A stretch of DNA of 43,405 bases, from positions 1-43,405 of the forward strand of contig CBFFRP010000213.1 of the NCBI GenBank assembly GCA_965644295.1, read 5' to 3'. The notes under the pieces are model-generated. The model was not told the origin of the DNA. It was given only the letters and a program-made list of their open reading frames with translations, and made no database searches. Origin of the DNA: Paraphysomonas bandaiensis (Eukaryota > Protista > Chrysophyceae). Position numbers and translations under genes: made by a program. Shown in pieces: positions 3,229 through 43,393 of this stretch. The number at the start of each line of letters is the position of its first letter. The stretch's first letter is position 1.

Positions 3229-3229
3229 T

Positions 3230-11204: not shown

Positions 11205-11253
11205 GTAATATTACTTAATAAGTAGTACTCAATCTCTGTGATATAACAATATT

Positions 11254-14200
11254 ATGGGGGAAAGTAAGAGAAGCAAAATAAAAGCAGCTCCTCAAATAGA
11301 GGAATTGTTAGCTGCTTCGGGTTCTTCGTCTAAAAAGACGAAAAGAGAGAGAGAATCCTCTCGGAAACGAGCAAGAGATGCAACAACATCATCTCAAATG
11401 CAATCTTCTCCTCAAACTGAAACATCAGTAGAGGCGGAAGGAGAATTGAGTGGAGTATCATTTCGTGAGCTCTCTTCTTCTCAACCAAAGAGAAAGAAGC
11501 AAAGGAGTGGAGATCCGCACCCCAACAGGAGTGAGCGTATTGACTTGAATGAAGTCATTGCGACGGAATCCACTCCACATGAAGTAATCAATACCGACTC
11601 TATTCCCTACTTAGGTAGTGTGCAAGATGAGGATATCATCGAATTTTGTGAAAATCTCTCGAAAAGAGATCCTAAAGGGACAAAATTCATAAGGTCAGAA
11701 ATCATGGCACCAACAGTGCGTGATATGCTTCAGTTTCAGCGACAGCAGGATTTTGGAGATGAGTCTGACGAGGACTGGCTAGATCCAAACATTGTAACTA
11801 CTGAGGAATTGATTCAGTGGTTAAAGCAAGCCTTTCTAGAGGAAGAGGAGCGATACTCTGATACATTGGAGCCTCTTCCTAGGTTCATAGATAATATCAT
11901 TGGACCAAAGGTTAAGGTGGATATTCATGTTCCTAAAGTATTCTTAAAAGAATATGGACGTCTGAATGAGCTTTATAAGCTCATTCCGGAGGCAAGTCTC
12001 ACAGAGGTAGCCTCGGATACCATAGTCAAAACCCTCAAGAAAAACATTAAACTTGTGGGCGGACATTCCTTCAGAAAGGATGCCAAAGAGAAATTTATAG
12101 CGGATATAGGCCAAGGTCAATCTGCACCAAAAGATTTCGGAGCATTCTGTAGAAAGGTGCGAGAGCTTAACAATGACTATAGTCAAGCTGTGAGAAAAGT
12201 AAAGAGGATGGAAACTAAATTGGATTCCAAAGAAACGTCTAAGTCTAACAAGTCTAAGACTACAAAAACTTCATCCTCCAGCTCATCCTCAAGTACTAAA
12301 GCGACAACTGATACTAAGGAAGCATGTTGGATATGCGGTAATCTTCATAAAGGTGACTGCACCCGCAAAACCTGTGCATGGGCTAACCATGAAAAGAAGC
12401 CATGGAAAGATTCCACACAGGGCAAAAAATATGCGGCTATGGGTTGGAGTACCTGCCCTTATGTGGAGAATCCTGATGGTCCTCCGAGATCGAAAACAAG
12501 TAAGTTATCATGCCCTAAGTGTTTATATATAAATGCTATTGACATGAATAATGATATGCTCGATGTCTTTGTATATCCTAAAGCTGATGTCAATGTACAA
12601 CAGGTAAAGGAAAATCTAAGGGCTAAAGCCTTATTGGACACGGGGGCTACTGGGAATAATTTCATTAACCAAGAACTTGCTGATATGTTAGTTGCTAGGT
12701 ATAATATTCCATTGCACGAGTGTAACATTAAAATTTGTAGTGCGCTTGATAATGCTTGTTGTAGTAGCAAGCAATATATGATAATAACTATAAGATTAAC
12801 TGATGAGTATAACAATACTCTTGATATTGAGTTGCAATGTTTGATAATAGATAGCACCTTTGATATCATAATTGGTAGAGAAACTATCAAGAAATATAGA
12901 TTAGTTGATCATTTTCCATCTCACTTTATGGAAAGAGAGTTAGCAGGGAAAATGCTAGCTACGGCCGCGGGCCATGCTGAGAAGACTCAGCTTCTCTCGG
13001 AACATATTAGTGAGAGAACCACAGTGTCGGATATGCCAATGGATGTTCCACCTTTTGAATTAGAGGTAGATAGGGATGCTTGGGAACAACCAAAACATTG
13101 TGGTCCGCCACGAAAGATGGATCGAGTACGACAGTATGCTTGTAAAAAGCAAATCGATACATTTGTGGAGCATGGAATAATACAACCAAGTACGGCTCCT
13201 TATTATAGCCAGGTATTATTAGTTCCCAAACCAAATGATAAATGGCGATTCTGTGTAGACTATAAAGGTCTAAACAAGCACACACAGAGGGAACGTTGGC
13301 CAATACCTAACATCAAAGAAATGTTAGAACGTATTGGGTCTAAGAAACCCAAATACTTCATAATTCTGGATTTAGTATCTGGTTATTACCAGGCTAAAAT
13401 TTCAGAGTACTCGAGGAAGTGGACGGCATTTATAACCTTCTGGGGAGTATTCGAATGGCTCCGACTACCCATGGGTTTGAGTGGTGCTCCATCATACTTT
13501 CAACGAGTATTAACAACAATTGTGCTTGCCGGGTTGATTATGTTCATATGTGAATTATATCTAGATGACCTGATTATATATGCTTCTACAGAAGATGAAC
13601 TAATTGAAAATTACGTTAAAGTTCTAGAACGCTTCAGGAAATACAATGTTTACATTAATCCTGAGAAAGTGAAAATAGGAGAGTCCGAAGTACAATATGT
13701 AGGACATACTCTAAATGAGGAAGGGTTACACTTTACTAGAGAACGTCTGGATAGTGTATTAAATTTCCCAAAGCCTGAAACTATGAAGGGTCTAAAATCT
13801 TTCCTCGGATTGGCAAATTATTTTCGGGATCACGTGCACAACCACTCCTTAGTGGTGAGACCGTTAAATAAAATGCTTCTCAACTATCATAGACGTAAAC
13901 GTCTACAATGGACAGAGGATGCCAATGAAGCATTTGAAAAGATCAAATTGATGATCCATGAATGTCCAACATTATTTTTCATTGATGACGAGTCACCAAT
14001 ATATTTATTGACCGATGCATCTGATTATGGAATAGGAGCATACCTCTACCAAGTAGTAGATGGTGTAGAACGTCCAATAGGATTTCTCAGTAAAACATTC
14101 GATGAAAGAATGATGAATTGGGATACACCTCAGAAAGAAGGATATGCTAAATACTATGCCTTAGATAAATGGGACTACCTATTAAGGTATAGATACTTTA

Positions 14201-15768: not shown

Positions 15769-16097
15769 TAACAAAGTTTACAGAATTGAGTGTCAATATA
15801 ACACATTAACACATCAATTATAAGGGGAGGTAGTATAAGACTATTGAGCTTACATACCGACTACATACGTCAACATGTCCTGTAGTGTATGCTCAGTAGC
15901 ACTGTACTGAATTGTATGTGTACCATGTAGTTAGGAATGCAACTGTAGGGCATTGTTGCATTGATTAGCCATAGCAGACATCTGCCGTCAGTGCTATTAG
16001 CCGTTAATATTCTAGACAGATTACTCTGATACTACACGTATCACCAGCAGGTTGTATCCTGTAGATAGAATTGCCATACACAAGACAACCTCTATGC

Positions 16098-17428
16098 TCA
16101 TTAACAACTGCTGTAGGATCAGGTTCCAGATCCTGCGATGAAGTAACGTCCTTGGCTGAGCCACGACGTAAATCCACGTTACCCTCTTCATCATCTGAAG
16201 AACTAGGGTATTCGAGATTTATCTGCTCCGGACCTCGATCAAAATCCGAATCATCAGAAACATATCCATCAATGTGAGTGAGAGCATGTGAATCTCTGTT
16301 ATTCCGATGATCATAGTCCTTGTAAGAAGTAGACCGCATCGGAGACGGATGTTTCTCATTATTCTTGGAAAACAAATCCCTTTTCCGTTTGTTGTACTCA
16401 TCAAGTTTGTTTTTAGCCTCAATGTTAGCCTCAAACGGTAACTGACGAGCTGCTAAGCAAATCTGATAATGATCTACTAAAATGGCCGTAAATTCATCGA
16501 AAAACTCGTTCATCGTGTCAAACTGTAGTTTATTCATGCACCCAAAGACATAACGAACATAATCCCTATCGTTCAAGTTTTTGAATAGTCTTACGAGCCC
16601 ATATTCTTTGTCATCTACTCTGGGACACCAATCCTTATTAAACTCCAACATAATGGATAACATGGTTCGAAACAAATCAATAAGTTTCAACTGTTGGAAG
16701 TAAAACTGTTCGAACGTGACAGTTGTCACTTTCCTCCACTCCATGATCTTTATGTGTCTAAGAGAATCTCGTAGCTCCTCATAGAATCCCACACAATTAA
16801 AAACCCGAGTTTCCTTTGCAATTACACGCAGTAAGTCGGACAAATCCATCTCTGAAATCTCCGCATGACCGAGATGATACACTTCTCTTAGATGATCTCT
16901 TAATTCTCCAGAGACAACCTTTTGTAGACGCACAGTGGTCTGTTCCTCTTCTTGAAAATCCAAGATTTGTTTGACAGCTCTAGCCACTTTAGAAAGCTTT
17001 AGTTCATTGATACGAACTTTGCAAGTCCTTTCCTCACGCATTACAACAGTCTGTTGCACATTTGGAAGGTTGGCATTCTTTTTCAATTCCCTGAACAGCT
17101 TCCCAGGTTTCTTGCCTCCTAACAAAGCTTGAGTTCTAGTAGGGAATTCAGAAGCCACCTGCTGATCACCATCTTCCTCAGCATTGCCATTTGACTGAGC
17201 AGTAGAAGTATCTTCCTCCTCCAACAATTCTCTTACAGACTCATCCCGCCAAGGAGTGCGATAGTGCTCCGCTAAATTATGCAGAGTAGAGTATCTCCTC
17301 GTATCACGTTTCTTTACCGGTTTCGGCAACGTGTCAGGAACTGTAGGTGTTCCTTTCGTAACTGTTTCATCTGCCCCTGGGATATTTTGATCTTCCCTTA
17401 GAATCGTGGGGCTCTGCGCTCTAGAGCC
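16098..17428 (-). pseudogene. gag: Element A gag, central part (N-terminus at 23012-23219, probable C-terminal tail at 10799-10887)
   Basis: Removing B2 plus one agcc TSD joins ...RGTPVG to SRAQSPT... in frame. It lies between the 5' LTR and pol. Confidence 0.8.
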
Positions 17429-20400
17429 TGTGGGCTTGCATACATATGTGTATGTGTGCAAAGCAATACCCAAGTACAGAAGTACAAAATAATGATTATT
17501 ATCGTATAATGAATCATGAATAATACTGTCTACAATATCAACGGCTAATAATACTGTCTACAATATCAACGGCTAATAATACTGTCTACAATATCAACGG
17601 CTATTGCTAATCCCAACAATCACATTCCCTACAGTTTGTATTCCTAACTACATGGTACACGTATACAATACAGTACTGTACTACTAATCATATAATACAG
17701 GACATGTACACGTATATATTCTATATGTAAGTGGATAGTCCTACACTACCTCCCCTTATAATTGATGTGTTAATGTGTTATATTGACACTCAATTCTGTA
17801 AACTTTGTTATTAATCTTCTTCATCAGAAGAATAAACCACATTTCGAGGTAGTAAATTTCTTACATTTTCATCAGGATGTTGAGTTAGGAAATTTTGTAG
17901 AGCATACGTTTTTCTAACGTTAGCCCATGGTTCCCATGTAGGTTTTTCATACCCTATCCAATGTACTAGAAATTTTATTTGACTTTTCGGACCTTTAGCT
18001 CGACCTTTTATTTTTGAAATATGGTCAATAGCATAAAAGTTTCCACCATCTTTACATGCCACTTGTAAGGGGTCAATAGTAGAGGGATCGTAATTAAATT
18101 CCCTTAATTTCTTTATATGATAGTCTTTATTACGTTTAGTAACAATATCTTGAAGAGTATATTTGTCTCCAATAACATTGACTACTCGCATTGGACCTTT
18201 AAGATATGGTAATAACTTACTTGCCGGTCCAGGACGTAAAGCATTTTGTCTATGCTCAACTAACACATAAGAATTTATTGGAAATTCTTTTGTTTGTATA
18301 TTTGGTGCAGTTGCCATGTGGATTTCATCATGTTTGCGAAGATTTCGTCTTGCAACATCCATAATAGTGGACTGAACCTTTTGTATTCTATCTATCCAAT
18401 GTGATAGCTTTTGTTCGTTCCCGTCCAAGTTCTCATTGTGTTCAATGAATAAACTCTTATCTAAATCTACTGCATTCCCAAATAGAATACTAGCGGGAGT
18501 AACGCCGGTGCTTCTATGTTTAGAAGAATTCATAATTCTTTGTACTAAAGGTAGATACATTGACCAATTATTTAGTACATTTTTATCAAATATAATATTT
18601 CTTAAGTGCCTTAAAATTTCTTTATTAGCACGTTCCACTATAGCATTTTCTTCTTTAGAATACGCCATCGAAAATGATTGATTACTTCCAACCATTTCTA
18701 TCAATGATTTTGTTAAATCATCCACAAATGCTGGTCCAAGATCCGAATGAATCTCAATAGGTGCTCCATATCTACCCAGGTGTTGAAGCAATCCCCTTTG
18801 CCGCCGCCATGGCAGTGAGATTCTTAGTAGGGATTAATTCTACCCACCTAGAAAAAGAATCGATAATCACTAATATATTAGTGTATCCATCCTCATCTGG
18901 ATGCAGACTCTGAATAAAATCCACTGCTATTCTTTGCATCGGGCCATATGTTGAGACAGTAAAGGGATGAGCATTAATTATTGGTTTAATTCTACTCATC
19001 TTTTGACAACAAGGACAAGTTTTAATAAATTTTGTCACATGTGCCCCTTGCTTTGACCATTTATGACCATTGTCTCGTAATTTTTGTATTGTACGATCAA
19101 TACCATGATGACCTGTAACATTGTTATGAAATCTTTTAATAATTTCCCATTCCTTGTTTGGAACTTTAATATCGGGAATTAGGGAAGCACATTTTGTTTC
19201 CATTTTAGATTCTAATGCACATAGTCTACTAAATGCATCAGCAACAACATTATCAGATCCTTTAATATCACATAGATCATAATCATATGCTTGGAAACAT
19301 TTCAACCATCGCTGAACTTTCTTATCCTTAGCGTAATCAGTTCTCAACTGAGTAATATTTTTATGATCTGTTTTGATCGTAAAGTATCTATACCTTAATA
19401 GGTAGTCCCATTTATCTAAGGCATAGTATATAGCATATCCTTCTTTCTGAGGTGTATCCCAATTCATCATTCTTTCATCGAATGTTTTACTGAGAAATCC
19501 TATTGGACGTTCTACACCATCTACTACTTGGTAGAGGTATGCTCCTATTCCATAATCAGATGCATCGGTCAATAAATATATTGGTGACTCGTCATCAATG
19601 AAAAATAATGTTGGACATTCATGGATCATCAATTTGATCTTTTCAAATGCTTCATTGGCATCCTCTGTCCATTGTAGACGTTTACGTCTATGATAGTTGA
19701 GAAGCATTTTATTTAACGGTCTCACCACTAAGGAGTGGTTGTGCACGTGATCCCGAAAATAATTTGCCAATCCGAGGAAAGATTTTAGACCCTTCATAGT
19801 TTCAGGCTTTGGGAAATTTAATACACTATCCAGACGTTCTCTAGTAAAGTGTAACCCTTCCTCATTTAGAGTATGTCCTACATATTGTACTTCGGACTCT
19901 CCTATTTTCACTTTCTCAGGATTAATGTAAACATTGTATTTCCTGAAGCGTTCTAGAACTTTAACGTAATTTTCAATTAGTTCATCTTCTGTAGAAGCAT
20001 ATATAATCAGGTCATCTAGATATAATTCACATATGAACATAATCAACCCGGCAAGCACAATTGTTGTTAATACTCGTTGAAAGTATGATGGAGCACCACT
20101 CAAACCCATGGGTAGTCGGAGCCATTCGAATACTCCCCAGAAGGTTATAAATGCCGTCCACTTTCTCGAGTACTCTGAAATTTTAGCCTGGTAATAACCA
20201 GATACTAAATCCAGAATTATGAAGTATTTGGGTTTCTTAGACCCAATACGTTCTAACATTTCTTTGATGTTAGGTATTGGCCAACGTTCCCTCTGTGTGT
20301 GCTTGTTTAGACCTTTATAGTCTACACAGAATCGCCATTTATCATTTGGTTTGGGAACTAATAATACCTGGCTATAATAAGGAGCCGTACTTGGTTGTAT

Positions 20401-23011
20401 TATTCCATGCTCCACAAATGTATCGATTTGCTTTTTACAAGCATACTGTCGTACTCGATCCATCTTTCGTGGCGGACCACAATGTTTTGGTTGTTCCCAA
20501 GCATCCCTATCTACCTCTAATTCAAAAGGTGGAACATCCATTGGCATATCCGACACTGTGGTTCTAAATCTATCCTTATAGATTTCATGGATTTCTCTCA
20601 CCCTCCTTTGTAAAGATTCGGGACCAGAGATTTTAGTTGGTAACGTAGTACCTTCTACTTTTTCCTGAGTATTTGTAACTATTTCTTCTGGGATTGACTC
20701 CAGATAGTTATCTCTAATCTCGCCTATATCTTCCTTTTCATATGCACTTATACGCATGGATGATATTGGAGGTGAATACATAGTACTAACCAAGCTATTA
20801 CTTGTAAGTAAATTATTATTATAACTAAGGTGTTCCTTAGCTTGGCGCCTTAATGTTTCCATGTTATTATAACATGTGGCTCTCTCACTAATATGTTCCG
20901 AGAGAAGCTGAGTCTTCTCAGCATGGCCCGCGGCCGTAGCTAGCATTTTCCCTGCTAACTCTCTTTCCATAAAGTGAGATGGAAAATGATCAACTAATCT
21001 ATATTTCTTGATAGTTTCTCTACCAATTATGATATCAAAGGTGCTATCTATTATCAAACATTGCAACTCAATATCAAGAGTATTGTTATACTCATCAGTT
21101 AATCTTATAGTTATTATCATATATTGCTTGCTACTACAACAAGCATTATCAAGCGCACTACAAATTTTAATGTTACACTCGTGCAATGGAATATCTATAC
21201 CTAGCAACTAACATATCAGCAAGTTCTTGGTTAATGAAATTATTCCCAGTAGCCCCCGTGTCCAATAAGGCTTTAGCTCTTAGATTTTCCTTTACCTGTT
21301 GTACATTGACATCAGCTTTAGGATATACAAAGACATCGAGCATATCATTATTCATGTCAATAGCATTTATATATAAACACTTAGGGCATGATAACTTACT
21401 TGTTTTCGATCTTGGAGGACCATCAGGATTCTCCACATAAGGGCAGGTACTCCAACCCATAACCGCATATTTTTTGCCCTGTGTGGAATCTTTCCATGGC
21501 TTCTTTTCATGGTTAGCCCATGCACAGGTTTTGCGGGTGCAGTCACCTTTATGAAGATTACCGCATATCCAACATGCTTCCTTAGTATCAGTTGTTGCTT
21601 TAGTACTTGAGGATGAGCTGGAGGATGAAGTTTTTGTATTCTTAGTCTTGTTAGACTTAGATGTTTCTTTGGAATCCAATTTAGTTTCCATCCTCTTTAC
21701 TTTTCTCACAGCTTGACTATAGTCATTGTTAAGCTCTCGCACCTTTCTACAGAATGCTCCGAAATCTTTTGGTGCAGATTGACCTTGGCCTATATCCGCT
21801 ATAAATTTCTCTTTGGCATCCTTTCTGAAGGAATGTCCGCCCACAAGTTTAATGTTTTTCTTGAGGGTTTTGACTATGGTATCCGAGGCTACCTCTGTGA
21901 GACTTGCCTCCGGAATGAGCTTATAAAGCTCATTCAGACGTCCATATTCTTTTAAGAATACTTTAGGAACATGAATATCCACCTTAACCTTTGGTCCAAT
22001 GATATTATCTATGAACCTAGGAAGAGGCTCCAATGTATCAGAGTATCGCTCCTCTTCCTCTAGAAAGGCTTGCTTTAACCACTGAATCAATTCCTCAGTA
22101 GTTACAATGTTTGGATCTAGCCAGTCCTCGTCAGACTCATCTCCAAAATCCTGCTGTCGCTGAAACTGAAGCATATCACGCACTGTTGGTGCCATGATTT
22201 CTGACCTTATGAATTTTGTCCCTTTAGGATCTCTTTTCGAGAGATTTTCACAAAATTCGATGATATCCTCATCTTGCACACTACCTAAGTAGGGAATAGA
22301 GTCGGTATTGATTACTTCATGTGGAGTGGATTCCGTCGCAATGACTTCATTCAAGTCAATGCGCTCACTCCTGTTGGGGTGCGGATCTCCACTCCTTTGC
22401 TTCTTTCTCTTTGGTTGAGAAGAAGAGAGCTCACGAAATGATACTCCACTCAATTCTCCTTCAGCCTCTACTGATGTCTCAGTTTGAGGAGAAGATTGCA
22501 TTTGAGATGATGTTGTTGCATCTCTTGCTCGTTTTCGAGAGGATTCTCTCTCTCTTTTCGTCTTTTTAGACGAAGAACCCGAAGCAGCTAACAATTCCTC
22601 TATTTGAGGAGCTGCTTTTATTTTGCTTCTCTTACTTTCCCCCATAATATTGTTATATCACAGAGATTGAGTACTACTTATTAAGTAATATTACTGTGGG
22701 CTTGCATACATATGTGTATGTGTGCAAAGCAATACCCAAGTACAGAAGTACAAAATAATGATTATTATCGTATAATGAATCATGAATAATACTGTCTACA
22801 ATATCAACGGCTAATAATACTGTCTACAATATCAACGGCTAATAATACTGTCTACAATATCAACGGCTATTGCTAATCCCAACAATCACATTCCCTACAG
22901 TTTGTATTCCTAACTACATGGTACACGTATACAATACAGTACTGTACTACTAATCATATAATACAGGACATGTACACGTATATATTCTATATGTAAGTGG
23001 ATAGTCCTACA
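17429..23011 (-). mobile_element. Ty3/gypsy element B, copy B2 (full length, 5583 bp)
   Basis: 317-bp LTRs at 17429-17745 and 22695-23011; 4-bp TSD agcc (17425-17428 / 23012-23015); PPT at 17746-17758. Confidence 0.96.
17811..22645 (-). pseudogene. gag-pol: B2 gag-pol, broken by two +1 insertions (~21195 and ~18795)
   Basis: Three ORFs nearly identical to consecutive parts of B1 gag-pol. Extra G in ggtataGatatt and in aaaGgggatt relative to B1. Confidence 0.9.
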
Positions 23012-31819: not shown

Positions 31820-34011
31820 AGAACTACTAGATTCAGCCTTCGCCTAGTGGAGCAGTGTATTTATAATTTAGCGCAGCTGTACCCTGATTGACACGTATGG
31901 CTGCTGGATGTACGCTATAGTCGCAGTACCATATCACAGTCGTCAATATACTTGATGTTGAAGGTTCTCGTACCCTGCAACGTATTCACTTTACATACTC
32001 CCGTTTAGTTCATTGCCCTAATTTTAAATTAATTATAATTCTCATAGCAATATATTGTTGGAGTATTATTCACGACAGTCGTTCTTGTCTGTTGAGAGAC
32101 TACCACCATAGAAGTCAATATGTTGTAATTGTAGTGTTGTGCTCTAGAGTAGTGTAGTGTGTAGTAGAAGCGAAAAGTGTTGTATTGTGCGATCGGCACA
32201 ACGAACTTACTAATACTCTGAAGAAAATTGAGGTACATATATAATATATATATTATACATGATATATGAATAGATAAGATTTTCACTATACTGTGAGATG
32301 GACTGGGGAAATATGATAAACATAGGATTTGTAGTAGAACTGGTATTCACCTAATGCTATATAAACATTGTGAGGTATACTGAGGATATAGTACTCATGC
32401 TGTTGAAATATGCACGATACTCTCATAAGAGAAATATATATATTAAAGACATTGAAAGAATCATCAATAATGACGAATTCACCGAAAACCTGAAGGTATA
32501 ATATATGTAATAACCAGCTATCGGATTATTTTATAATATAAGCTCTTTATCTTTATTGTATATACTCATGCTTGTACATACTCTATATTAAAATTTGAAG
32601 TAATAATAATATTATTATTAATGTCGGCTCTATGAATCAAGATCTACTGAATAACATGACAATGATATGATAGGCATACTATTGATATGTTATGAATTGA
32701 TATATCACAGATACAGACAAAGAAATAAAAGATATATTATGATGAAAACTATGATTGATGATATTTACAGGACATTATTATAATGACGCGTAAGGCAGAA
32801 GAATTTTACTGGAAAATTCCGGGATCTATATCCAGGTTAATAGATGTGTATTGCCAAATTATCCAGTATTACAGTTGTAGTGTTGTAGTGTTGTTCTGAA
32901 GGGATTGTAGGTTGTAGGAATCCTATATCTCAAGTCTTCTTGCACATATACATACCTATTTGGTGCGTATATAGAACAACATAATATATATTTATATATA
33001 TTATCCATAGTATCCAATGTTAAATATGAAAGATCTGTTTCAATTGGAACACTAATTTTCTTAATTATTTCTTCGCTAGCTAATTTACTGCTAAAATACA
33101 AAAATCCATAATTAATCTTTTAGTTGCATTCAGCTTTTACACTCAATTCAATATATTTTCTCTAAAATCATCTGTATATATATTATATTATATATTATAT
33201 GTTTATTAAATATATGAAAGTCTGATTATTTTTACATGAGTACGGTTGCGTACAGAAACTAGTTTATGTCTATAGACTAGAGCTAATAACTAGATTTGCT
33301 ATATACTACTAGTGGCGGGCAACCGTCTCGGGACTGCTTGTGCATCGCTGCGAGCACCATGGTGCAACCGTCCCTTGTAGTGAGGTTAGTCGGGGGGTCT
33401 ACCTTTGGGCAATGTGTCTGGCGGGCCTGTGCCATGGATTATGTGGGGGGTGGGTGAGGCGAGATGTATATGAGAGTGCAAGTCGGTGGTGGAGATGGTG
33501 CTGGTTGTTGAGGTGGGGTTTCGGCTACAAGTAAGGAGAAGTTGTTTCCGGAGTGGTTGCCCTTGCCTCTAAGTGAACCCAATACATAGCCGGTCAATTG
33601 GCCGCTTCCCGGTCAATTTTTAGATAAGGCTATAATAGTGCTATAGTTGCAAGTATGTATGCGCTGAATATTGTCAGTATATTAAAATTATTTTTTGCAT
33701 TAAAATTTGTCACATATTGAATGTTGAAGTTGAAGTTTTTAACGGTAAATTCAAAGTTTTAAAATCAAAAGTAAATCACTTTATGATGTATCATCTCAAT
33801 GAAATAGTAATTAAAAAAATATATACAAAATAAAATTCATTTGTAATAAAGCTATTACTACAGCCAATATATAAAGATTGATAATATATAAGATACAACA
33901 ACAAAGAACCATCATAATGTAAACCTCTAACCACATAAATAAATGAAAAATTCAAATTCAAATCTACACAATATACAACTAAACAACATAATATATATCG
34001 TGAACAGCCCA

Positions 34012-37000
34012 CTAGTCATCAGTGTATTCCTCTGACGAGTCTGATAACATTACATCGGATAATCCATCAGCAGGAGGCAAAGTGGGAACATCAACAGAAG
34101 ATCCGACTATTGGAGAGAAAGATGATTTCAAAGCCGAAATTTTTCGTTCGGTAGTGGAAGCGACAACAGAAGATTTTCTTAGAGCTCGTGACTCTTTAAC
34201 TGCCGCAACTTTCTGTGCAATAGATCGAACAAGCTTATTACAACGCTCTTCCTTGTCCATATTTTGATGCCTCTGATTCGAAACATTGAGCAGAGAACAA
34301 TGATTTGTTACAGCTGTAGTCTTTAAAGTGCCGTCATTCTCACTTTCGCTGCTGCTGGAGTTAACTGGTCTCTTTCTCGCTCTGCTTCTTGACACGTTAG
34401 CTCTACTATCAGAAGGGGGAGGTACAGGGGAGTTCATGGCACCAACGATTGTTCCAGATCGAAGAGTTCTTGGTTTAAAAACATCAACTGTCACCTCTTC
34501 GTCAAATTCTGCAGGAGGAACTAACTCTACTCTCCATGTTTCCAGAGTTTTTCGAGGGGCCTTAAGCTTCTGAGGAGACGAAGTGTTTTTATCAAACTTA
34601 ATCATCGACCTCTTCTCACTCGTAGACAAGAAGTCTTGGCACCTGACATAAAACCATTCACTAGAGCCAGGTGGAGGAGGAGATGGATTCGTGACATGGT
34701 TATAAAATTTAAAGTACACCTCATCTCGGTCTCCTCCGACGCGACGAACAACCGCATGGATCTTTCCGGTTTTGCATCTCTCCCCAAAATGAGCTTTCTG
34801 CACGTATTTATCGATAACTTTAAATGTACTTCCAACTCTATACTGAGGCGAACCATATATCGGAAGTTTGTGATCTCTTTTGCAAATTAACCAGCCGTCG
34901 TCGGAATCGCTACCAGTCGAAGAACTAGAACAGTCATCATTAAACGACAAGTCTTCTTCGCTCATGGAATTTTTATTGTTGTCGAATCCTCGTTCAGGAC
35001 TACTTCTATCAGCACTATGCTCTTGTTCAACTAAATTTTGCCCTTCGGATACCTTACCGCTTCTTAAACTCTTCAAAAACTGCTTGGTTTTCAGCTGCTG
35101 GTTACGCTTCTTCTTTTTTCGTTGTTTATCATTATTGTCTCTTCCACTGATATCCTCTTGTTCAGGACACAAAGAGTTTTTCTTTGCAGTCTTGCAGAAC
35201 ACAGGAACGGAATATAGAACACCTTCCGGTCCATCTACCACAAAGTTTGGCAAATGCATGCTTACATCATCTGCATCTACTTTACGGCCTCTGCGTGACC
35301 AATGCACATAATCAGTCATGCATGAAACACGAGAACGGCTTTTACTGGGCTGATCAAGAGATCGAGGAGGGCCCTTACTACCCTGCTTTGGCAGGAAAGG
35401 TTCACCTTTAACCAGTTGATTAAAAAATGGAATATGCAACGGATGATCCTTGATAAAATCTTCCACATCATCAGTCTGGGGGGCTATATAGTCTCGAAAA
35501 TGCTTCCACTCATCATGAAAGGTCTTCCCCACATCCGTACCATACTCCTGGCAAAATTTCATACACACATCTTCCAGCAATTTACGCGAGCCAGGCACAA
35601 ATGCTTCAGGAATAATAGCTTCCTTCTGTGGAAACTCTTTCAGCAAAAACATTCCCTGAGGAATGCTGTATGTGGGCTCAGCAAGAGGATACCATTGGAT
35701 GTCTTCCAATTCATCAGTTTCCATTCCACACAGAGCCGAATAATCTTTTACAATGCGTGTGTGACAATCTGCGGCGAATGGGCGCCAACTAGTTTTCACT
35801 CCAAGTGGGAAAAAAGGCAACAAATCTGGATCTTCAATTTTCTCAAACTTGAACTGAAGGACAGACCAATCCTTTTCACCAACACGCTTTGCATATCTTT
35901 TAAATTTAGAATCCACACTCTTCCGAATAAACTCATCGTAGTCTCCTATCACAAAAAGATCTTGAACTTTACAGGGAAGGCCATCGCGACCAACTGCAGT
36001 TTCTATGCAATTTTTGTAGTCACTCATGGTGAGCACAAAGGCATTACGAACTCTACGCCAAACCTTAGCAAAACGAGCATCAATATCTTCGTGAGTGTGG
36101 CCAACCATGAGCCGAGACATATGTAACCTCTTCACAACGCCCCTTGCAACAAGTAGCTCGCACATCCCAATCACAGTCTTAGAAACATTCTCCTTTCCAC
36201 CGTCGACTTGAATGAAAACGTCATCGGGAATTCTCCCTTCTTCGTTATATACTTTCTCAAGAGCAAGCAACAGAGTGTGTATCTGCATGTTTGCATCATT
36301 GAAACAGTTATGATAAGTTCTGAACATTTGACAATACCGGCCGTGGGCAAGGACTCCTTGGATATGCTGTGGCAACGTATCTGAACCATCCAAGTTACCA
36401 TACCAAGGAAGTTCACAATGAGCCTGCATCATCCCATCTGTAATGATGGATAGAAATTTATCAGGCATTGTCATTGCTTTCCTTCTTCTTTCATAATACA
36501 GCCTCCTTTCATTCATATAACCCATCCGATGACAAGCATGCAACATTTGAATATGTTTTCGCTCCATTCTACCCTTATGAGTTTTTCGGGCAAGTCCCAG
36601 CGCCGCGCATGTATGACACTTCCCAACAAGACCAATATACTCTCTTCGCTTTACATTCGGAAAACACTCTTCCCACAACAGTTCAAATTCACTTTTTGAA
36701 ATCACTTCTTGGCCATTCAATTGCACGTCGAAAGCATACTCATCGAATATTTCATTTGTTGTCAGTGGCTCAATAACTACATCCCATCCATTGGGTTCAG
36801 TCTCCCCAACAAGCGCAAAGAAGTCATCCAACCAGGCAAAACAATTTAAAGACTTTACGGACGAAGGAACTGCCAAAGAGGCCAGTCGATTTTTGTCGAG
36901 TGTAATGCCCCTCAAACGAGCAAACTCTTGAAAAGCATGAATAAAGTTCGGGTTATTCTTCAGGGAAACTCTTCCACCCCCATCGGTAGTACTTGCTCGA

Positions 37001-37443
37001 TGCCCAGCATCAGACGTTACAAATCCTAGCAAGCATAATAGTGAGTTAAGAGTAGAGAAAAACGAAGAATTATAAAATATACCTTGTTTGACCTCATGTC
37101 GAATGTCCATCAGCTGGGTCTTACCAATGCCATATACATTTAAAAAGCATTGCATACAAACCCCATACTCTTTATGATGTATTCCGGTACCCAGAATGTA
37201 GGGACAATCTAAATATCCACCAGAAGAGATTCCAACTGAAGCATCTCGAATCTTGCTGAAGATATAATCGTGCTTCTTGAATCTGTCCAGTTCAGCAACT
37301 TCGTCAAGACAGTGCTTGATGACAGTAATGGCACGAGCTTTCCCAAGTAACTTCAAGCATTTAGCTGGACAACATTTTTTATTGTAAATTCGTAGGGCTT
37401 GGAGTCGTTTGGCATTTTTGTCTGTGAATATAATTAACATCAC
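34012..37443 (-). CDS. DDD-type transposase (Sola-like / DUF7869-like); 5' exons unresolved
   Basis: CxxC..H motif (GKCHTC...HACH); acidic triad IITDGM, QVDGGKEN, VGHTHEDID; long low-complexity C-terminus; probable in-frame intron at ~37027-37083. Confidence 0.8.
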   Translation of the reverse strand: MMLIIFTDKNAKRLQALRIYNKKCCPAKCLKLLGKARAITVIKHCLDEVAELDRFKKHDYIFSKIRDASVGISSGGYLDCPYILGTGIHHKEYGVCMQCFLNVYGIGKTQLMDIRHEVKQGIFYNSSFFSTLNSLLCLLGFVTSDAGHRASTTDGGGRVSLKNNPNFIHAFQEFARLRGITLDKNRLASLAVPSSVKSLNCFAWLDDFFALVGETEPNGWDVVIEPLTTNEIFDEYAFDVQLNGQEVISKSEFELLWEECFPNVKRREYIGLVGKCHTCAALGLARKTHKGRMERKHIQMLHACHRMGYMNERRLYYERRRKAMTMPDKFLSIITDGMMQAHCELPWYGNLDGSDTLPQHIQGVLAHGRYCQMFRTYHNCFNDANMQIHTLLLALEKVYNEEGRIPDDVFIQVDGGKENVSKTVIGMCELLVARGVVKRLHMSRLMVGHTHEDIDARFAKVWRRVRNAFVLTMSDYKNCIETAVGRDGLPCKVQDLFVIGDYDEFIRKSVDSKFKRYAKRVGEKDWSVLQFKFEKIEDPDLLPFFPLGVKTSWRPFAADCHTRIVKDYSALCGMETDELEDIQWYPLAEPTYSIPQGMFLLKEFPQKEAIIPEAFVPGSRKLLEDVCMKFCQEYGTDVGKTFHDEWKHFRDYIAPQTDDVEDFIKDHPLHIPFFNQLVKGEPFLPKQGSKGPPRSLDQPSKSRSRVSCMTDYVHWSRRGRKVDADDVSMHLPNFVVDGPEGVLYSVPVFCKTAKKNSLCPEQEDISGRDNNDKQRKKKKRNQQLKTKQFLKSLRSGKVSEGQNLVEQEHSADRSSPERGFDNNKNSMSEEDLSFNDDCSSSSTGSDSDDGWLICKRDHKLPIYGSPQYRVGSTFKVIDKYVQKAHFGERCKTGKIHAVVRRVGGDRDEVYFKFYNHVTNPSPPPPGSSEWFYVRCQDFLSTSEKRSMIKFDKNTSSPQKLKAPRKTLETWRVELVPPAEFDEEVTVDVFKPRTLRSGTIVGAMNSPVPPPSDSRANVSRSRARKRPVNSSSSESENDGTLKTTAVTNHCSLLNVSNQRHQNMDKEERCNKLVRSIAQKVAAVKESRALRKSSVVASTTERKISALKSSFSPIVGSSVDVPTLPPADGLSDVMLSDSSEEYTDD

Positions 37444-37852
37444 CCCAACATCGGCAGGTATTCATTGTTACCATCAAGGAGCTGATGCCTGTTATAAACT
37501 CCTGGTCCTACATGCCCTAACCCATGTGGCATACTTTATATTAAGCACAGTTTTGATGTGTATTATAACGTGATGCCTCTCTAAGGAAGTATTGAAACAT
37601 GTTGCCAGAGGTATTGTACGTGCTTACTGATATGCTGCGACATGACGTGTACACCTCCCACCTACCCTCGTACTATTATTATCCAATCATTTTAGTCATT
37701 ATCATTACATACAAATATGATTGGTCAAAAATTTGGTTCAAGTTGCATTTATCGTTTTTTTGTGTATCAACACGCTGTGATGACAATGAGTTCATGACTC
37801 TTAAGCAGACATTGCGGGGTAAACGACAAGATTTTGGCCCCATAAGCAAGCA

Positions 37853-39603
37853 ATGTCTTCACCTCATACCACTACCACAAATGTTGCCACCGATTACGAA
37901 ATGCTGCAATGTAAGGGGAAGAATTGTGGTGGCAAAATGTTTAAATCAAACGAAGTTGGTGCCAACAAGGTGTTGATGCTGTGCGCTCTGTGCCACAACT
38001 CCTTAAAATCTTTCATTGAAGGTGAGCACATATCCATTATTTTAATTACAACTTCTAAATAAATTGTAGAAGGCGATATATCTGGACAAACAAGTGAGAA
38101 TATTTCTGATTCTTCAGGGATTCCGTCAAGATTCTTTGGAAATGAGGACGAGGAAGGTACAAAAACACCTTTATCCAATGAGATGAACGATGAAGAAGTT
38201 GACATAGATGAGCAACACACCAACCAGCAGCAAGAGGCGGATTCCTCTTCTGTATTACCAGTTGTTCTACCAGTCGACACTCCAGCTCCACCGTCTAACA
38301 TCGGACAGATGAAGGCAATGTTTCGTGTTCTGGTCTCAATGGCAAGAAATGAAACCATGACCATGACATTGAATTCGGCTTTACTACAGTGGGAATTAGC
38401 AGATGCTGCTATATCTATCATGAAGAACACGCATCACTTCTTTGTGGTGGGGCGGGAGAGGTTAAAATTATATTGGTTTGAGCAGTATGGCGCCATTATG
38501 ACCCCATCTCACCTGTACGTGGAGTACTGTAGCTTGTCCAATGGCGATGTAATTGTTGGTGTGTGGGAAACGCGGTGTAATAGACCATTTCATGCTATTC
38601 TTGTTTGGAGGAGACCTACCGGGAAATGTGAACTTTTCACGGTTGCTGATCATCGGCACGTTTTCCTTGGTGTTGTTCTGGATCCTTCTGCAACATTTGA
38701 CTTTGAGATTTGCTACAAGTAAGTAATAACTAACACTTTGTCGTGTGTATTACCTTCTAAATTTTATTACTCTAGAGCTAAAATGGAATGGCTTGTCGTA
38801 CATCGTCGTATTTTCGATATCAAGAGGGGTTTGCATGAAAACTGCAAGTATGTGATTTAGCTATACTCCACTGTTACTTATAATCGAAACTATGTTGTAG
38901 ACATCCTGAAGTCAGTGATCCGCATGACAGTGATGGTGACGATGATGCCAGTAGTGATGGTCATGGTGGTATTGGAGAGGATTATAATTTATCGGATGAG
39001 GGTGAGGATGAGGTGATTGAGGACTCAGTTGCCACTACTTCCGCCAGTGATTCTCTGAAATCTCTCAGAAAATCACGAAGAAAGCGCAAGCCAGTAACTC
39101 AAATTTATTCACCTGCCATAGAAAAACGGCCAAAAAGAAGAGAAGCACAAAAAAAGGTAGTGAAAGAGAGGAAGAAACCCACCACTGGATCACAACCTCG
39201 CCGTTCCCCCCGGAAACATGTTATCAAGGAAAGTCATAACGATGCGCCGCTGCGTAAACGACCACCGCTGCCTCCTCCATCCAAGCGATTAGCCCCACCC
39301 AGCGGTGATGATGACATTAAAGCAGTGCTTACCAAGATGGTTCAGCAACAAAGTGAGCTTCTGAAGCTCATGCATGATAATTGCAATGCAACTGAGCCTG
39401 GCTTGCGTGAAGAAAAAACTTCTACTCCTTCTTCGAAGCAGCTTTCTGATCCAACCCTGCAACGTAAGCATTCGATGCAATCCTTCATCGAGAACAATCT
39501 CGAGATGGCACGGCTAATCGAGGAGAACGCAAGGCTCCGAAAGGAGCGCTTGGTTCAAAAATTTTTGTCCTCATATATGAGGAATGATGATGGCAACTTT
39601 TAA
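37853..39603 (+). CDS. Element E accessory protein (spliced; Cys4 finger-like N-terminus, acidic and basic tracts, C-terminal coiled coil)
   Basis: Intron 38022-38069 joins ORF 37853 to ORF 38183 in frame. Further GT-AG pairs near 38719-38775 and ~38848-38900 lead to ORF 39013-39603. Confidence 0.65.
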
Positions 39604-40153
39604 TGCTGGCGACATTAATGTATGTGCTTCACACTTATTGTTGGTTTCGTTGTTGTAACATACTACATACGAATTAATTATGTTGTTATTGCTAGGGTAT
39701 TAAGATTAATATGATAAGAAAATACTTCTCTTGTTGGTGAGTAGTAGTCATGAATGATTAGCAATTATGTAATGTATATATATATGAATCGAGATAATAC
39801 TATTATGTATTAAATGTATAGTGATGTATACAAGTATCATAATAATACGCTAGATACATACTGTTTAAAAATATTGTAAAACGAAGTTTTCATTCTTTAA
39901 CTTATGTTTTTAATTACTATTTCATTGAGATGATACATCATAAAGTGATTTACTTTTGATTTTAAAACTTTGAATTTGCCGTTAAAAACTTCAACTTCAA
40001 CATTCAATATGTGACAAATTTTAATGCAAAAAATAATTTTAATATACTGACAATATTCAGCGCATACATACTTGCAACTATAGCACTATTATAGCCTTAT
40101 CTAAAAATTGACCGGGAAGCGGCCAATTGACCGGCTATGTATTGGGTTCACTT

Positions 40154-43100
40154 CTGGGCTCTTGCAGAGAGTGTAGTTCGTGGGGTGGATGTCGCCTGGA
40201 GTAGCTGGAGTACTTTTGGTGTCGGGTGGGTATCCTGGGGCTGGCGTTGCTTTGCGTGTGTCGGGACCGGTGTCGCCGGTGCCGTGTCTACGTTGTGGTG
40301 TCTGTGTCCCCTATTGCGAAGCATGCGGAGCCCTCCATCATATAGGGGGAGTAGGATAGAGGCGATGGATTTTTCTAGGGCGTGGAATTGATGTTCGAGC
40401 AGTGAGCTGGATATGTGGCGTCCGAATGCGCCGGCCATTTGTGTGGCAGTAATGTGGCCGGTCCAGTAGCGCTCAACCTGGGGGGTGGTTGGGTTCCATG
40501 CGGCTTTGGCTAGTTTGGTTATGGCGGTGTAAAACCAGGGATGGGGGAGCGTGCGTGTGCGAAGTTTGTCAAGCTTATTGTGGTGTGCTTGGTGGACATC
40601 TTCACGTATGTGAATGATGTCAGGGTGAGTGCAGGTGAGAAGCATGTGCGCCATGTTGTCTGTGGGGTGTGCACAGTCTGCGCATGTGGAAGCCGTTGTG
40701 CGATCGTGTCCGGATTTTCCTTTGGCTCGGTTTCTACCCATTGCAAAGGATTTGTCCCATACGTATGCCGTCTCGCGTATACGCTCTGCGAGGGGGATGT
40801 AGTGTTTGGAGGAGTTATGGGTACGGAGGGGATGGAGCTTGTGTGGGAGCCTTGTTCCGCTGCGTGTCCAATACTGCGGGTCTCGTTGCGTTTGTGCAGC
40901 ATACATGCTATCTCGTCGGAGGGTGTATTGATGGAGGTCCCACTGGTGGTGGAGATCTGTAACGTCTCCTAGCATAGGACCGAGGTCTGTGAGGAGGTGT
41001 GTATCGTATCTACGCCAGTGCCATTGACCCGTGGTGAAGAATTCTTCCAGTATGTGCGTAGCGTCTGTTGTGACAACACTGTAGTTGGAGGCTCCGAGCA
41101 CTTTGTCTAGTGTCTTCCAGTCGCCGCTGGCGGCGGCGTCAGCTATATAAATGCCGTGGTCAGTGTAGGTCCAGTTGCTTTGATCTTGTGTTCTACGTTC
41201 GGGGTGCGAACGCGTCCATTGTATTGGGCGCTGTTTAAGAGCTGTGGTGGCGAGGCATTCGTAAAATATTCCCTGGGGCTTTGTTCCGAGGGCGCGCCGT
41301 CTGTGTGAGAGGGCCTCTTTGGTCCGCGTCTGTACCGCCTGGCAGTCAGTCCAGATTGGCACGGAAGAGTGGAGTACATTGGAGAATGTCAGTGCTGCTG
41401 ACATTGCAAGGGTTTCGTAGGTGTATGCGTTGAGGCCAGGCGCTGTGTACTGTGGTGCCGTAAGTTGTAGGATTTTGGTTTGTCTGTGACCCCAGGTGTT
41501 CTTGGGCGGGAGCCATACAATTGCAGCTCCTCCGTCGTGAGAATTGGGCTGTGTGTGGGTGTTGCCGAGTAGGTGAGCAGGGGTGAGGTGTGTGCGTGTG
41601 AAGGATCCATCCGTGAAGATGGCTTTGTAAGCATATTTGTGATCATTGTACAGTTGTAGCTGTGATTGGACTTTGTCAATGGTAGCTCGGAATTGTGGCG
41701 TAGCTGGGGAGGGAGGTTGTATTCTGATGCCTAGTTGTTGCCCCCATTGTACCAGACTGGTGATGTACGTGTCAACGTCCTGGGTGTGTCCATCCGTGAA
41801 GATGGCTTTGTAAGCATATTTGTGATCATTGTACAGTTGTAGCTGTGATTGGACTTTGTCAATGGTAGCTCGGAATTGTGGCGTAGCTGGGGAGGGAGGT
41901 TGTATTCTGATGCCTAGTTGTTGCCCCCATTGTACCAGACTGGTGATGTACGTGTCAACGTCCTGGGGGGGGTGCTCGTAGCGTTGCAAGAGCGATATGG
42001 CCGCACTCTTGGGCTGTCCTCCGAGTGTGAGAGCTCGTTGAAGAGTATGCCATTTCTGAGTCTGGGCGTGGGTTGAAAATTTGCGCAGTCCAAGCCCTTT
42101 GTATTTCGGGGGAAGGTAGATAAGATCCGTGGGATATCCAGGGGGGAGACGGAGTATTTTCCTAGCGGCCTGCGCGAGTAGTTTGTCTATGGCGATGTAT
42201 TTAGCGTATGTCCAGGATGCTTTGGTGGCCTTGTATAGTAGGGTCGGGAGTATTTGTGTGTTGAGGACGAGTAGCTTGCAGTCAGGTGTCGCGCATTTGG
42301 ATCGTAGAACTGCCGTGGATGTGGCTATGTAGGTGGTGCACCAGCTGTGGGAGTCGGTGTCCTTTACTGAGAATGGAAGTTGTACGCCGAGATACTTGGT
42401 GGAATTGGTGGTTGTTCGGATGGGGATGGGGTGTGGGCACCAGTTCCAGTCTCTTATGATGATGTGTGGGTTTGATTCTAACATGGCCGTCACCGCAAAT
42501 GGGGCTCCCAGGGCAATGCATTCAGTTTTGGGGATGTTTAGTTGCATTCCGGAGAAGGCGCAGAAGGATGAGAGTTTGTCGGCCTTGAGCTGAGTGGCCT
42601 CAATGGAAGTTGTGATTTGGGAGAGGTCATCTGCGTACGCCTCATCTTGGCTATCATCATGTAGGTCAGACCAGCATAGGATCATGTCAAAGATGACGAT
42701 CCATGCAACTGTGGATTCAGTTCCACCTTGTGTGACCCCTCTCTCCGCGGAGAATCCCATGTCAGGGTGCTGGATAAAGGAGCCATCTGAGCCAAGCAGT
42801 TCTTCGAGTGATCGGGGATCGATGTTGTCGGCCATGTGTGGGGTCCAGATGAAGGTGCGACCCCCATCGTCGAGGTCGCTTAGCCATTTGATCGTGTCAT
42901 CGGGGACACCAAGTCTTGCCCATGCTAATTTGAGAAGATTGGGTGCGATGGAGTCGAAGGCCTTTTGAAAGTCCCAGAAGGTGCAGAGTTTCACATGCCC
43001 GGTAAGTTTGGCCAGTTCCGTGGCCGCGAGGACTCGTAGAATGGCCGTGTCCGTGCCGTGTCGCCATCGATAGCCGTGTTGCGCAGGGTGTAGGACTTCA

Positions 43101-43248
43101 TCTTCTTCCCATATGTGGAGGAGCCGGTGGGTGATGATACGGGTCATTAGTTTGCGCAAAACCTCTAGGAGCCCTATCGGTCGGAGGTTCTTTAGAGACG
43201 TGTGTCCTGGTTTTTTAAGAAGTGGCGTCATGACTCTGTCTCTCCACC
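40154..43248 (-). pseudogene. LINE F ORF: RT, RNase H, CCHC
   Basis: NLRPIGLL, DFQKAFDSI, GVTQGG, AYADDL, KYLGV; RNase H IFTDGS/ETLA/WTDC/SH/ADAAA; CADC..H....C. Confidence 0.92.
41606..41967. repeat. In-frame tandem duplication (179 bp plus 4-bp filler; period 183 bp)
   Basis: Copies at 41606-41784 and 41789-41967. Confidence 0.95.
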
Positions 43249-43393
43249 GTTGCACCAAGGTGCTTGCAGCAATGCACAAGCAGTCCCGAGAAAACTCAGT
43301 ATTTAGCAACTCTGATACCACTAGTCTAAAGTCGTAGATAGCTAAAAAAAAACAAAGTAGTTCTCTCATGTAATAATCAGATCTGTATATATA
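43249..43393 (+). mobile_element. Short retroposed element (5'-truncated LINE 3' end or SINE), inserted antisense into the RT of LINE F
   Basis: Flanked by TSD tgtctctccacc (43237-43248 / 43394-43405, reaching the window edge); similar to F's 3' UTR; ends in (ta)n. Confidence 0.8.

Follow-up and report, generated by a model that had tools for sequence, protein, structure and literature searches.

A probable autonomous DUF7869-family DNA transposon with Sola1-collinear core motifs and a divergently transcribed second gene in Paraphysomonas bandaiensis

INTRODUCTION

The Sola superfamily of transposons was reportedly introduced by Bao, Jurka et al. in 2009. To our knowledge, Sola1 is among the least studied cut-and-paste superfamilies, and we know of neither a solved structure nor any biochemistry for it. 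The textbook target site duplication (TSD) of Sola1 is 4 bp. Zator elements have a 3-bp TSD and a transposase derived from bacterial TP36/ISAzo13, and we know of no second gene in that superfamily.

The hallmark Sola1 TSD is given as 4 bp of the form AWWT/AWDT in a passage of PMC3845634 that cites Bao et al. 2009, the mean size of Sola1 elements is 5445 bp (PMC10294476), and Repbase assigns elements to Sola1 by PSI-BLAST similarity to reference transposases (PMC4455052). The core of Sola1-1_AP includes the segments FDLEKVLTTP, SDNCGGQN, and GHTQ (supplement of PMC3985635). The Zator-1 element of amphioxus has the 3-bp TSDs TAA and TTA (PMC12905397). An earlier note on the DNA studied here had described Sola groups as making 4-bp TSDs and as defined by a transposase. 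The 4-bp hallmark agrees with the literature, but a transposase-only definition does not, because Sola1-1_Ec32 of the brown alga Ectocarpus carries an accessory gene on the strand opposite to its transposase (PMC12477816).

RESULTS

Boundaries, terminal inverted repeats, and age of the element

The analyzed window is the 43,405-nucleotide Paraphysomonas bandaiensis contig CBFFRP010000213.1 in its entirety. Its positions 33571 to 40153 (6583 bp) very probably represent a single autonomous cut-and-paste DNA transposon of the DUF7869 family, recently inserted and with core motifs collinear with those of Sola1. The terminal inverted repeats (TIRs) are 251 bp long, and the left arm (33571 to 33821, plus strand), which begins with AAGTGAACCC, is complementary at 249 of 251 positions to the right arm (39903 to 40153, minus strand), which terminates in GGGTTCACTT. 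Mismatches are confined to TIR positions 176 and 248; the repeats are near-perfect, as claimed earlier, but measure 251 rather than 247 nucleotides. The element's termini are AAGTG...CACTT. Retention of AAG at all seven ends detected in the genome, with a variable preceding base, bears out the AAG...CTT ends originally proposed. Each TIR contains CCGGTCAATT twice without mismatch, at a spacing of 19 bp (33590 to 33618, plus strand; mirrored at 40106 to 40134); these are candidate binding sites for the transposase. The CGGTCAA core of both sites is retained, as GCGGTCAATT and CCGGTCAAAT, in a copy that is 82-86% diverged (C419).

The assembly holds one full copy of this transposon family. The element is low-copy and young: its TIRs are 99.2% identical to each other, the copy designated C28 is 98-99.8% identical to it, and the flanking LINE sequence matches other LINE copies at 99-100%. 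We also considered whether a left end (C541) and the right end of C28 belong to a single copy and rejected this pairing: the flanks, TTG versus CTG, are not decisive, and C541 diverges past TIR position ~241.

Sister elements duplicate 3 bp of target

Four sister elements with AAG...CTT ends are flanked by exact 3-bp TSDs (AAT, CTT, ATG, and TTG), and the fourth base never matches; the joint chance of four independent exact 3-bp TSDs is about (1/64)^4. One of these elements is nested in the C28 copy of our transposon, where AAT stands on either side of AAGTCGACC...GGTCGACTT (5709 bp, plus 3 bp duplicated); its true empty site, AAT, is found at 39385 to 39387 (plus strand), inside exon 4 of the second gene described below. 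Another, non-autonomous, lies in the same window at 1785 to 3770 (AAGCAACC...GGTTGCTT), with a TIR free of mismatches over 24 bp or more and the TSD TTG. Three further paired sister ends lie at C141:168470-169419, C297:677725-678917, and C491:12682-13390. These data show that the sister families of this genome duplicate 3 bp, unlike the 4 bp of Sola. The alternative ends AGTG...CACT with a 4-bp TSD, raised in the earlier note and taken here as TNNA, are contradicted by these exact 3-bp duplications and have T as the outer base at just three of seven ends. Four metagenome contigs (L095, L113, L116, and L130) also have AAG-containing termini, but their flanks never match, likely because assemblers joined flanks from different copies.

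The transposase

The transposase gene (34012 to 37443, minus strand) is an intact single open reading frame of 1143 amino acids with its ATG at 37440. The Pfam comparison proposed in the earlier note returned DUF7869 (PF25273; 108.1 bits against a gathering cutoff of 26, E = 5.6e−31), which is also matched by all 32 aligned transposase relatives. The RNase H-like catalytic core (residues ~277 to 566; 35746 to 36615, minus strand) contains the catalytic residues D336 (in IITDGM), D414 (in QVDGGKEN), and E452/D453/D455 (in GHTHEDID, 36079 to 36102). All of these are invariant across the 32 relatives, in agreement with the DDD transposase ending its core with GHTHEDID that had been read from this locus; the motif is present as VGHTHEDID. 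The structural model (pLDDT 83, pTM 0.81) is most similar to Mos1 (Z = 8.6) and Metnase (Z = 8.5) over ~175 residues; integrases, TnsB, IstA, and Sleeping Beauty come next (Mos1 and integrases, Z = 7-8.6). By eye, and only by eye, the core motifs are collinear with the segments of Sola1-1_AP and XP_003249065 (PMC3985635 supplement).

Upstream of the core, residues ~194 to 274 (36622 to 36864, minus strand) form a winged-helix, RFX-like DNA-binding domain, as indicated by structural matches to RFX5 (Z = 7.5) and RFX-DBD (Z = 5.8) and by Pfam RFX_DNA_binding matches in three transposase relatives (best E = 2.5e−4). For the N- and C-terminal parts of the transposase itself, scans against Pfam gave no match.

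Transposase relatives with up to 95% identity occur in environmental assemblies, and the family profile matches 16,810 cluster representatives. In metagenome contigs, a single-protein search recovered no close transposase relatives, and an alignment-based query recovered only relatives at 26-44% identity. DUF7869 has nine matches in bacterial genomes, mostly on short MAG contigs, and a 732-kb Nitrospirales contig holds one additional, broken copy; the bacterial matches are of no help for classification.

A spliced second gene conserved in environmental relatives

A spacer of ~410 bp (37444 to 37852), presumably a bidirectional promoter, separates the transposase gene from a second gene that is divergently transcribed and, like it, located inside the TIRs with their AAG...CTT termini. 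As the earlier note had proposed, this helper gene is predicted to be spliced, with four exons on the plus strand and three frame-keeping GT-AG introns (48, 57, and 53 bp), and both genes end adjoining a TIR, their stops 190 and 299 bp away. Exon 1 (37853 to 38021) contains the start codon together with a zinc-ribbon-like motif of the Cys4 type (C-x4-C ... C-x2-C-H). The N-terminal part encoded by exon 2 (38070 to 38718) is disordered and precedes a conserved beta-rich domain of ~130 amino acids (THHF ... WETRCNRPFH ... FD). The in-frame exon 3 (38776 to 38847) has 72 nucleotides and GT-AG introns on both sides, and exon 4 (38901 to 39603, stop at 39601 to 39603) encodes an acidic stretch, a K/R-rich stretch, and a C-terminal helical part. 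The predicted product of ~530 amino acids thus starts with a zinc-ribbon-like region, continues with the conserved beta-rich domain, and ends in a charged tail.

Searched individually rather than as a joined protein, the helper exons yielded neither a Pfam nor a PDB match, nor a significant match to any fold, and a Myb domain was not found. Exon 1 matches an IBR half-RING weakly (E = 0.039) and has an 89% identical copy in a derivative element (C12). The structural model of exon 2 (pLDDT 69) retrieved nothing in Foldseek at E ≤ 0.001, and VIA-align returned just SH3/Tudor/WYL-like barrels at Z of ~5, under the noise bar; neither an OTU nor a Myb fold appeared in these searches.

Seventeen environmental relatives of exon 2 were found, with 39-99% identity and 25 invariant columns. 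Transposase and helper relatives are found on contigs of coinciding size (4566, 6473, and 6561 bp), and relatives of exon 4 (98% and 46% identity) are on contigs sized like those of exon 2 relatives (2208 and 4327 bp), with a further pair at 6114 bp. The equal contig sizes suggest that helper and transposase are conserved as a pair among the closest environmental relatives. Within the 62.5-Mb assembly, exons 1 and 2 have no paralogues outside this transposon family. A profile of the 17 relatives finds this locus alone in the genome and has no match among 80 related metagenome loci, and no helper homologue is detectable at the genome's ~40 sister transposase loci. The helper is therefore not a property of the whole AAG...CTT group. 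Of the distinct lineage with a dedicated accessory protein suggested in the earlier note, the conservation alongside the transposase holds for the relatives but does not extend to the sister families.

The insertion site in the host LINE

The element is inserted within a host LINE, between GCCTCT (33565 to 33570, plus strand) and CTGGGCTC (40154 to 40161, plus strand). In 22 of 22 other LINE copies inspected (the genome has at least that many), seven additional bases, mostly GTCGGGT, stand between the two flanks, so that the usual reading is GCCTCT-GTCGGGT-CTGGGC. Because of this net loss of seven target bases, the TSD of this copy is unreadable. The flanks TCT and CTG have only CT in common, and a 4-bp duplication is not present, since matching TCTA to TCTG would require an A that belongs to the conserved AAG end. 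The absence of a Sola-like 4-bp TSD, claimed in the earlier note, thus holds for this copy and for the sister elements. To account for this copy, one must assume either that a deletion at the junction followed an ordinary duplication of 3 (or 2) bp or that the integration was aberrant.

DISCUSSION

Alternative readings of the locus

The earlier note had fixed the empty site by the restored reading frame of the LINE, giving the TSD CT (or TCT). In such a scenario, which we regard as rather doubtful, the lineage makes a 2-bp TSD and the element inserted into a LINE copy that had lost three codons in frame. CT is indeed common to both flanks, excision of the element with one CT restores the LINE frame as far as the normal stop, and a single extra event would suffice, because a 9-bp loss between two TCTG repeats is a natural product of slippage with 4-nucleotide microhomology. 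However, the proposed empty site has no match in the genome at up to two mismatches, all 22 inspected LINE copies retain the seven bases, and no LINE sub-variant lacking the 9 bp was found as an insertion target. Moreover, a two-base match is expected by chance in 1 of 16 cases, all four readable sister insertions are exactly 3 bp, and an independent deletion at precisely the insertion point of a young, 99-100% identical LINE copy is improbable.

A 3-bp TSD in the sister group raises the question of whether the element belongs to Zator, as Zator-1 has TSDs of this length; at this copy itself, the flanks are TCT and CTG, with seven target bases missing. The second motif, DGG(S/P/K)EN, resembles VDGGPDEN of Zator-1_HM, the top structural match is the mariner Mos1, and 95% of the members of one Atlas cluster carry DUF7869, while 11% carry PF07592. 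On the other hand, the window's transposase has no PF07592 match at E up to 10, none of its 32 relatives has one at E up to 1, and NCBIfam IS models gave no match; the genome as a whole is also without PF07592 matches, which is weak evidence, as control genomes are equally silent. The third motif, G-H-T-H/Q, is common to Sola1-1_AP and differs from PGRSAF of Zator-1_HM. We therefore give an assignment to Zator rather than Sola1 little credence. Similarly improbable, in our judgment, is a reading in which the second gene was captured as cargo or is a host gene carried as a passenger, with no dedicated part in transposition. In favor of that reading, the gene lacks any known DNA-transposition domain, and no homologue was detected at the ~40 sister loci or at the 80 metagenome loci with transposases of 26-44% identity. 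Nevertheless, the whole assembly contains no host paralogue, and on contigs of equal size the helper is conserved at 39-65% identity beside transposases that are 58-63% identical. Most likely, the helper is a lineage-specific cofactor of transposition or targeting.

Proposed mechanism and implications

We propose that the transposase acts through its winged-helix DNA-binding domain and its RNase H-like DDD core (D336, D414, and the D455 region). Binding presumably takes place at the paired CCGGTCAATT sites of each 251-bp TIR, and the enzyme may cut at the AAG/CTT ends, with integration following via a short staggered cut; a 3-bp stagger is seen in this genome's sister families. The helper, transcribed divergently from the shared 410-bp spacer, would likely serve as a cofactor in a role comparable to that of the second open reading frame of PIF/Harbinger. 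More tentatively, we hypothesize that a protist DUF7869/Sola1-like lineage moved to 3-bp TSDs and AAG...CTT ends, and that each of its sub-lineages possibly acquired an obligatory cofactor of its own, different from the others. In the present element, this would be an undescribed zinc-ribbon and tandem beta-barrel (Tudor/SH3-like) protein that tethers the transposase to DNA or chromatin and is needed for transposition.

An intact young element, a filled and empty site pair for a sister, conserved candidate TIR binding sites, and a conserved helper without a fold match together make a practical system for asking how TSD length and cofactor dependence evolve inside one transposase family. The element is also a possible tool for diatom or stramenopile genetics. 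For annotation, our data indicate that a 4-bp TSD rule is unsuitable for screening DUF7869 elements.

Comparison with known systems

The element shares with Sola1 a DDD transposase with an RNase H-like core, a long size (~5-6 kb), and, as judged by eye, a beta-1 aspartate followed 8-10 residues on by a proline, D..GG.(E/Q)N, and G-H-T after beta-5. It differs from Sola1 in the 3-bp TSDs of its sister group (AAT, CTT, ATG, and TTG), which show no AWWT/AWDT preference, in its AAG...CTT termini (GGACC... in the insect family), and in its helper gene with predicted introns. Sola1-1_Ec32 likewise comes from a stramenopile, is of the Sola1 type, and carries an accessory gene opposite in strand to the transposase, but it is 21.5 kb long and its accessory protein is a fusion of a ParB-like part and a DNA methyltransferase, whereas the element described here has 6.6 kb and an unrelated zinc-ribbon and beta-rich helper. 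Zator has the 3-bp TSD seen in the sister families, and it resembles the element in its short spacing of D-D-E/D and in a second motif like DGGxxEN, but not in the third catalytic motif, nor is there PF07592/ISAzo13 similarity by HMMER. PIF/Harbinger elements have a 3-bp TSD, as the sister families do, and, like the element described here, a transposase with a second, separately transcribed protein, a required cofactor there and probably a cofactor here; their transposase (DDE_Tnp_4/Plant_tran) is unrelated, and the Harbinger helper is Myb/SANT-like, whereas the helper of P. bandaiensis, in which a Myb domain was not found, pairs a zinc-ribbon-like motif with a beta-rich domain.

Termini and copies of the element

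The transposon at window positions 33571-40153 (6583 bp), which is inserted in a host LINE, is a real, recently active element, and the anatomy that the earlier note had drawn from its terminal inverted repeats (TIRs), ORF and second gene describes it well. An inverted-repeat search delimits two TIR arms of 251 nt each (33571-33821 and 39903-40153) that differ from each other only at TIR positions 176 and 248. When the window's own assembly (62.5 Mb, 669 contigs) was searched with the TIR, seven ends were matched, all of them starting with AAGTG or AAGAG and preceded by t, g, g, g, a, g and a, respectively. Because AAG is constant and the preceding base is variable, the element truly starts with AAG and finishes with CTT, in agreement with the ends proposed earlier. 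The only full copy found by this search is the one in the window. Partial copies are located on contigs C28 (right 1.3 kb of the element), C541 (left end, at the contig edge) and C419 (right end, 82-86% identical), with a rearranged derivative on C12 and an 85-bp remnant on C358. Each TIR holds two perfect copies of CCGGTCAATT, 19 bp apart, and the CGGTCAA core is preserved at both sites in the old C419 copy; these paired motifs are likely candidate binding sites.

The transposase is predicted to combine a winged helix with a DDD/E core

The transposase ORF occupies 34012-37443 on the minus strand (1143 open codons, with an ATG at 37440). Its sole Pfam match is DUF7869 (108 bits, cutoff of 26), and NCBIfam models gave no match to it. 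A word-indexed search recovered 62 relatives of the transposase core, every one DUF7869, the nearest being 95% identical (ENA) and the next 58-65% (JGI, ENA, Logan). Since a profile built from 32 relatives matches 16,810 cluster representatives, the DUF7869 transposase family is large. Columns invariant in the 32-relative alignment include the D of IITDGM (ORF residue 336), the D and N of QVDGGKEN (residue 414) and G-T-H-E-D-I-D of VGHTHEDID (residues 448-455). In bacteria, a broken DUF7869 gene is present at positions 4001-4574 of a stretch (L164) within a 732-kb contig of a Nitrospirales MAG; the remaining bacterial-MAG matches, located on short contigs, may represent contaminating eukaryotic DNA.

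The AlphaFold model obtained from the same alignment is good (pLDDT 83, pTM 0.81), and its predicted topology, beta1-2-3-alpha-beta4-alpha-beta5-alpha, is that of RNase H-like enzymes. Foldseek rows for the model are weak, yet all are RNase H-like (Argonaute PIWI, RNase H, Mos1). The top VIA-align matches are Mos1, both as its catalytic domain (Z 8.6, 174 aligned residues) and as the paired-end complex (Z 8.6), and Metnase (Z 8.5); integrases of retroviruses, TnsB, IstA, Sleeping Beauty, Tn5 and Mu rank lower. VIA-align also matched model residues 25-105 to the winged helices of RFX5 and cullin (Z 6-7.5), and three transposase relatives match Pfam RFX_DNA_binding. Together with the Mos1-like core, these matches point to a winged-helix plus DDD/E cut-and-paste transposase.

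A predicted spliced helper gene probably accompanies the transposase in close relatives

The divergent spliced second gene was also borne out. Read from the DNA, it comprises four plus-strand exons (37853-38021, 38070-38718, 38776-38847 and 38901-39603), which total 1593 coding nt (530 codons and a stop). The three predicted introns (48, 57 and 53 bp) begin with GTGAGC, GTAAGT and GTATGT, end with AG, and keep the frame. Homology was searched separately for each exon. Exon 1 has a C-x4-C...C-x2-C-H motif and a weak IBR match. For exon 2, 17 relatives (39-99% identity) were recovered, all of which stop at, or a few residues from, the donor site of the window exon. Their C-terminal ~130 aa form a domain under strong conservation, in which 25 alignment columns are invariant, THHF, WETRC.RPF and FD among them. 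Relatives of exon 4 are 98% and 46% identical to it. The helper model (pLDDT 69) is all-beta, and because its matches to Tudor, Spindlin, WYL, CarD and KOW barrels are within noise (Z about 5 at most), we infer a function rather than assign one: the helper would be a lineage-specific cofactor and is probably a nucleic-acid or chromatin binder.

Co-occurrence of this gene with the transposase, which the earlier note had put up for checking, is indicated for close relatives and was not seen for distant ones. Relatives of exon 2 and of the transposase are found on contigs of equal size (4566, 6473 and 6561 bp), as are relatives of exons 2 and 4 (2208, 4327 and 6114 bp). By our own arithmetic, chance alone would give about 0.2 such coincidences. 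Equal contig sizes tie the helper pieces and the transposase together indirectly. The helper had no match in 80 metagenome loci whose transposases are more distant, and neither single-exon searches nor the profile turned up a helper paralogue in the assembly beyond the studied family.

Sister elements duplicate 3 bp

The C28 copy of the studied transposon is interrupted in helper exon 4 by a 5.7-kb sister element (positions 544-6255 of L069, a C28 stretch), whose 573-aa DUF7869 ORF is 38% identical to the studied transposase. The C28 copy reads AAT/AAGTCGACC...GGTCGACTT/AAT, whereas the uninterrupted window has a lone AAT at 39385-39387. The two copies are a true filled/empty pair with a 3-bp target site duplication (TSD). 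The second gene of this sister starts with a different Cys-rich motif, CIECCDC...CEPC.

A scan of the collected DNA for AAG...CTT inverted termini yielded three further clean TSDs: CTT on C4, ATG on C430, and TTG around a 1986-bp non-autonomous element with perfect termini (AAGCAACCTTAAGAC...) at window 1785-3770. Each sister TSD is exactly 3 bp, with the fourth base mismatched every time, and the studied element is the sole outermost AAG...CTT pair in the scan without one. A 3-bp TSD is therefore the group rule, as given by the sister families, and the 2-bp TSD claimed earlier is left unsupported. In divergent metagenome relatives (26-37% identity), AAG is at, or at most 2 bp from, the inverted termini, and the flanks are uninformative.

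Two other arrangements were observed. At C66 105639-132041, the plus strand carries six AAGTCGACCTGGGCAT-family termini at spacings of 4-8.5 kb, none with a listed partner in reverse orientation; one-ended copies arranged in a tandem or segmental array could explain them. A giant near-perfect inverted duplication at window 11196-22703 (arms ~11196-15845 and 17757-22703), with matching AAG/CTT words (0-3 mismatches) throughout, looks like two head-to-head retroelement copies or an assembly artefact.

The window copy shows a target deletion in place of a readable TSD

The host LINE (33210-33570 and 40154-43369; RVT_1, ORF of >1073 aa) is very young: for each flank the assembly contains at least 40 matches that are 94-100% identical, and the LINE family is very recently active. 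The element junctions read ...GCCTCT/AAG on the left and CTT/CTGGGCTC... on the right. In every pair of flank matches assignable by contig, 7 bases separate the two matches, and the 22 inspected LINE loci read GCCTCT-GTCGGGT-CTGGGC, with one variant among them. The empty site that the earlier note had fixed by the restored LINE frame, giving a CT (or TCT) duplication (GCCTCTGGGCTC in context), has no genome match at up to 2 mismatches. The note's arithmetic was right in that the LINE frame survives when the element and one CT are taken out, but the residues differ: intact copies translate as ...SARAQ-TRQ-RQAQ..., and the window copy so treated as ...SARAQ-RQGQ....

The window copy thus shows a target deletion in place of a readable TSD. 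Because 7 target bases are absent, an n-bp TSD demands a (7+n)-bp deletion. A 2-bp TSD would be accompanied by a 9-bp loss between TCTG repeats, a single extra event with 4-nt microhomology; a 3-bp TSD (TCT) would likewise need a single extra event, a 10-bp junction loss, with 1-nt microhomology; and an aberrant integration could itself have removed the 7 bp. The window copy alone allows no choice among these three readings. To the right of the element, the window copy (40154-40157) and the C28 copy (L069 7034-7037) have otherwise unrelated flanks that both open with CTGG, which could be chance (1/256) or target preference.

Comparison with Sola1 and Zator

Bao et al. are said to have made a 4-bp TSD defining for Sola in 2009. 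Sola1 elements prefer AWWT as their TSD (PMC3845634), and neither this preference nor a 4-bp TSD is seen here. Zator TSDs are 3 bp (PMC12905397). The Zator-linked domain PF07592 was not seen in searches of the window protein, its relatives and the genome, except in one Atlas cluster with mixed annotation. We compared the window protein by eye with the RNase H cores of Sola1-1_AP and Zator-1_HM printed in the supplement of PMC3985635. The core motifs are collinear with those of Sola1-1_AP, where FDLEKVLTTP, SNEIGTCLL, SDNCGGQN and LERGHTQ align with window TDGMMQAHCELP, ANMQIHTLL, VDGGKEN and LMVGHTH, respectively, whereas the second motif alone is common to the window protein and Zator-1_HM. 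On this by-eye collinearity, we tentatively file the element as Sola1-like. In the brown alga Ectocarpus, the element Sola1-1_Ec32 is already on record as having an accessory gene on the opposite strand (PMC12477816).
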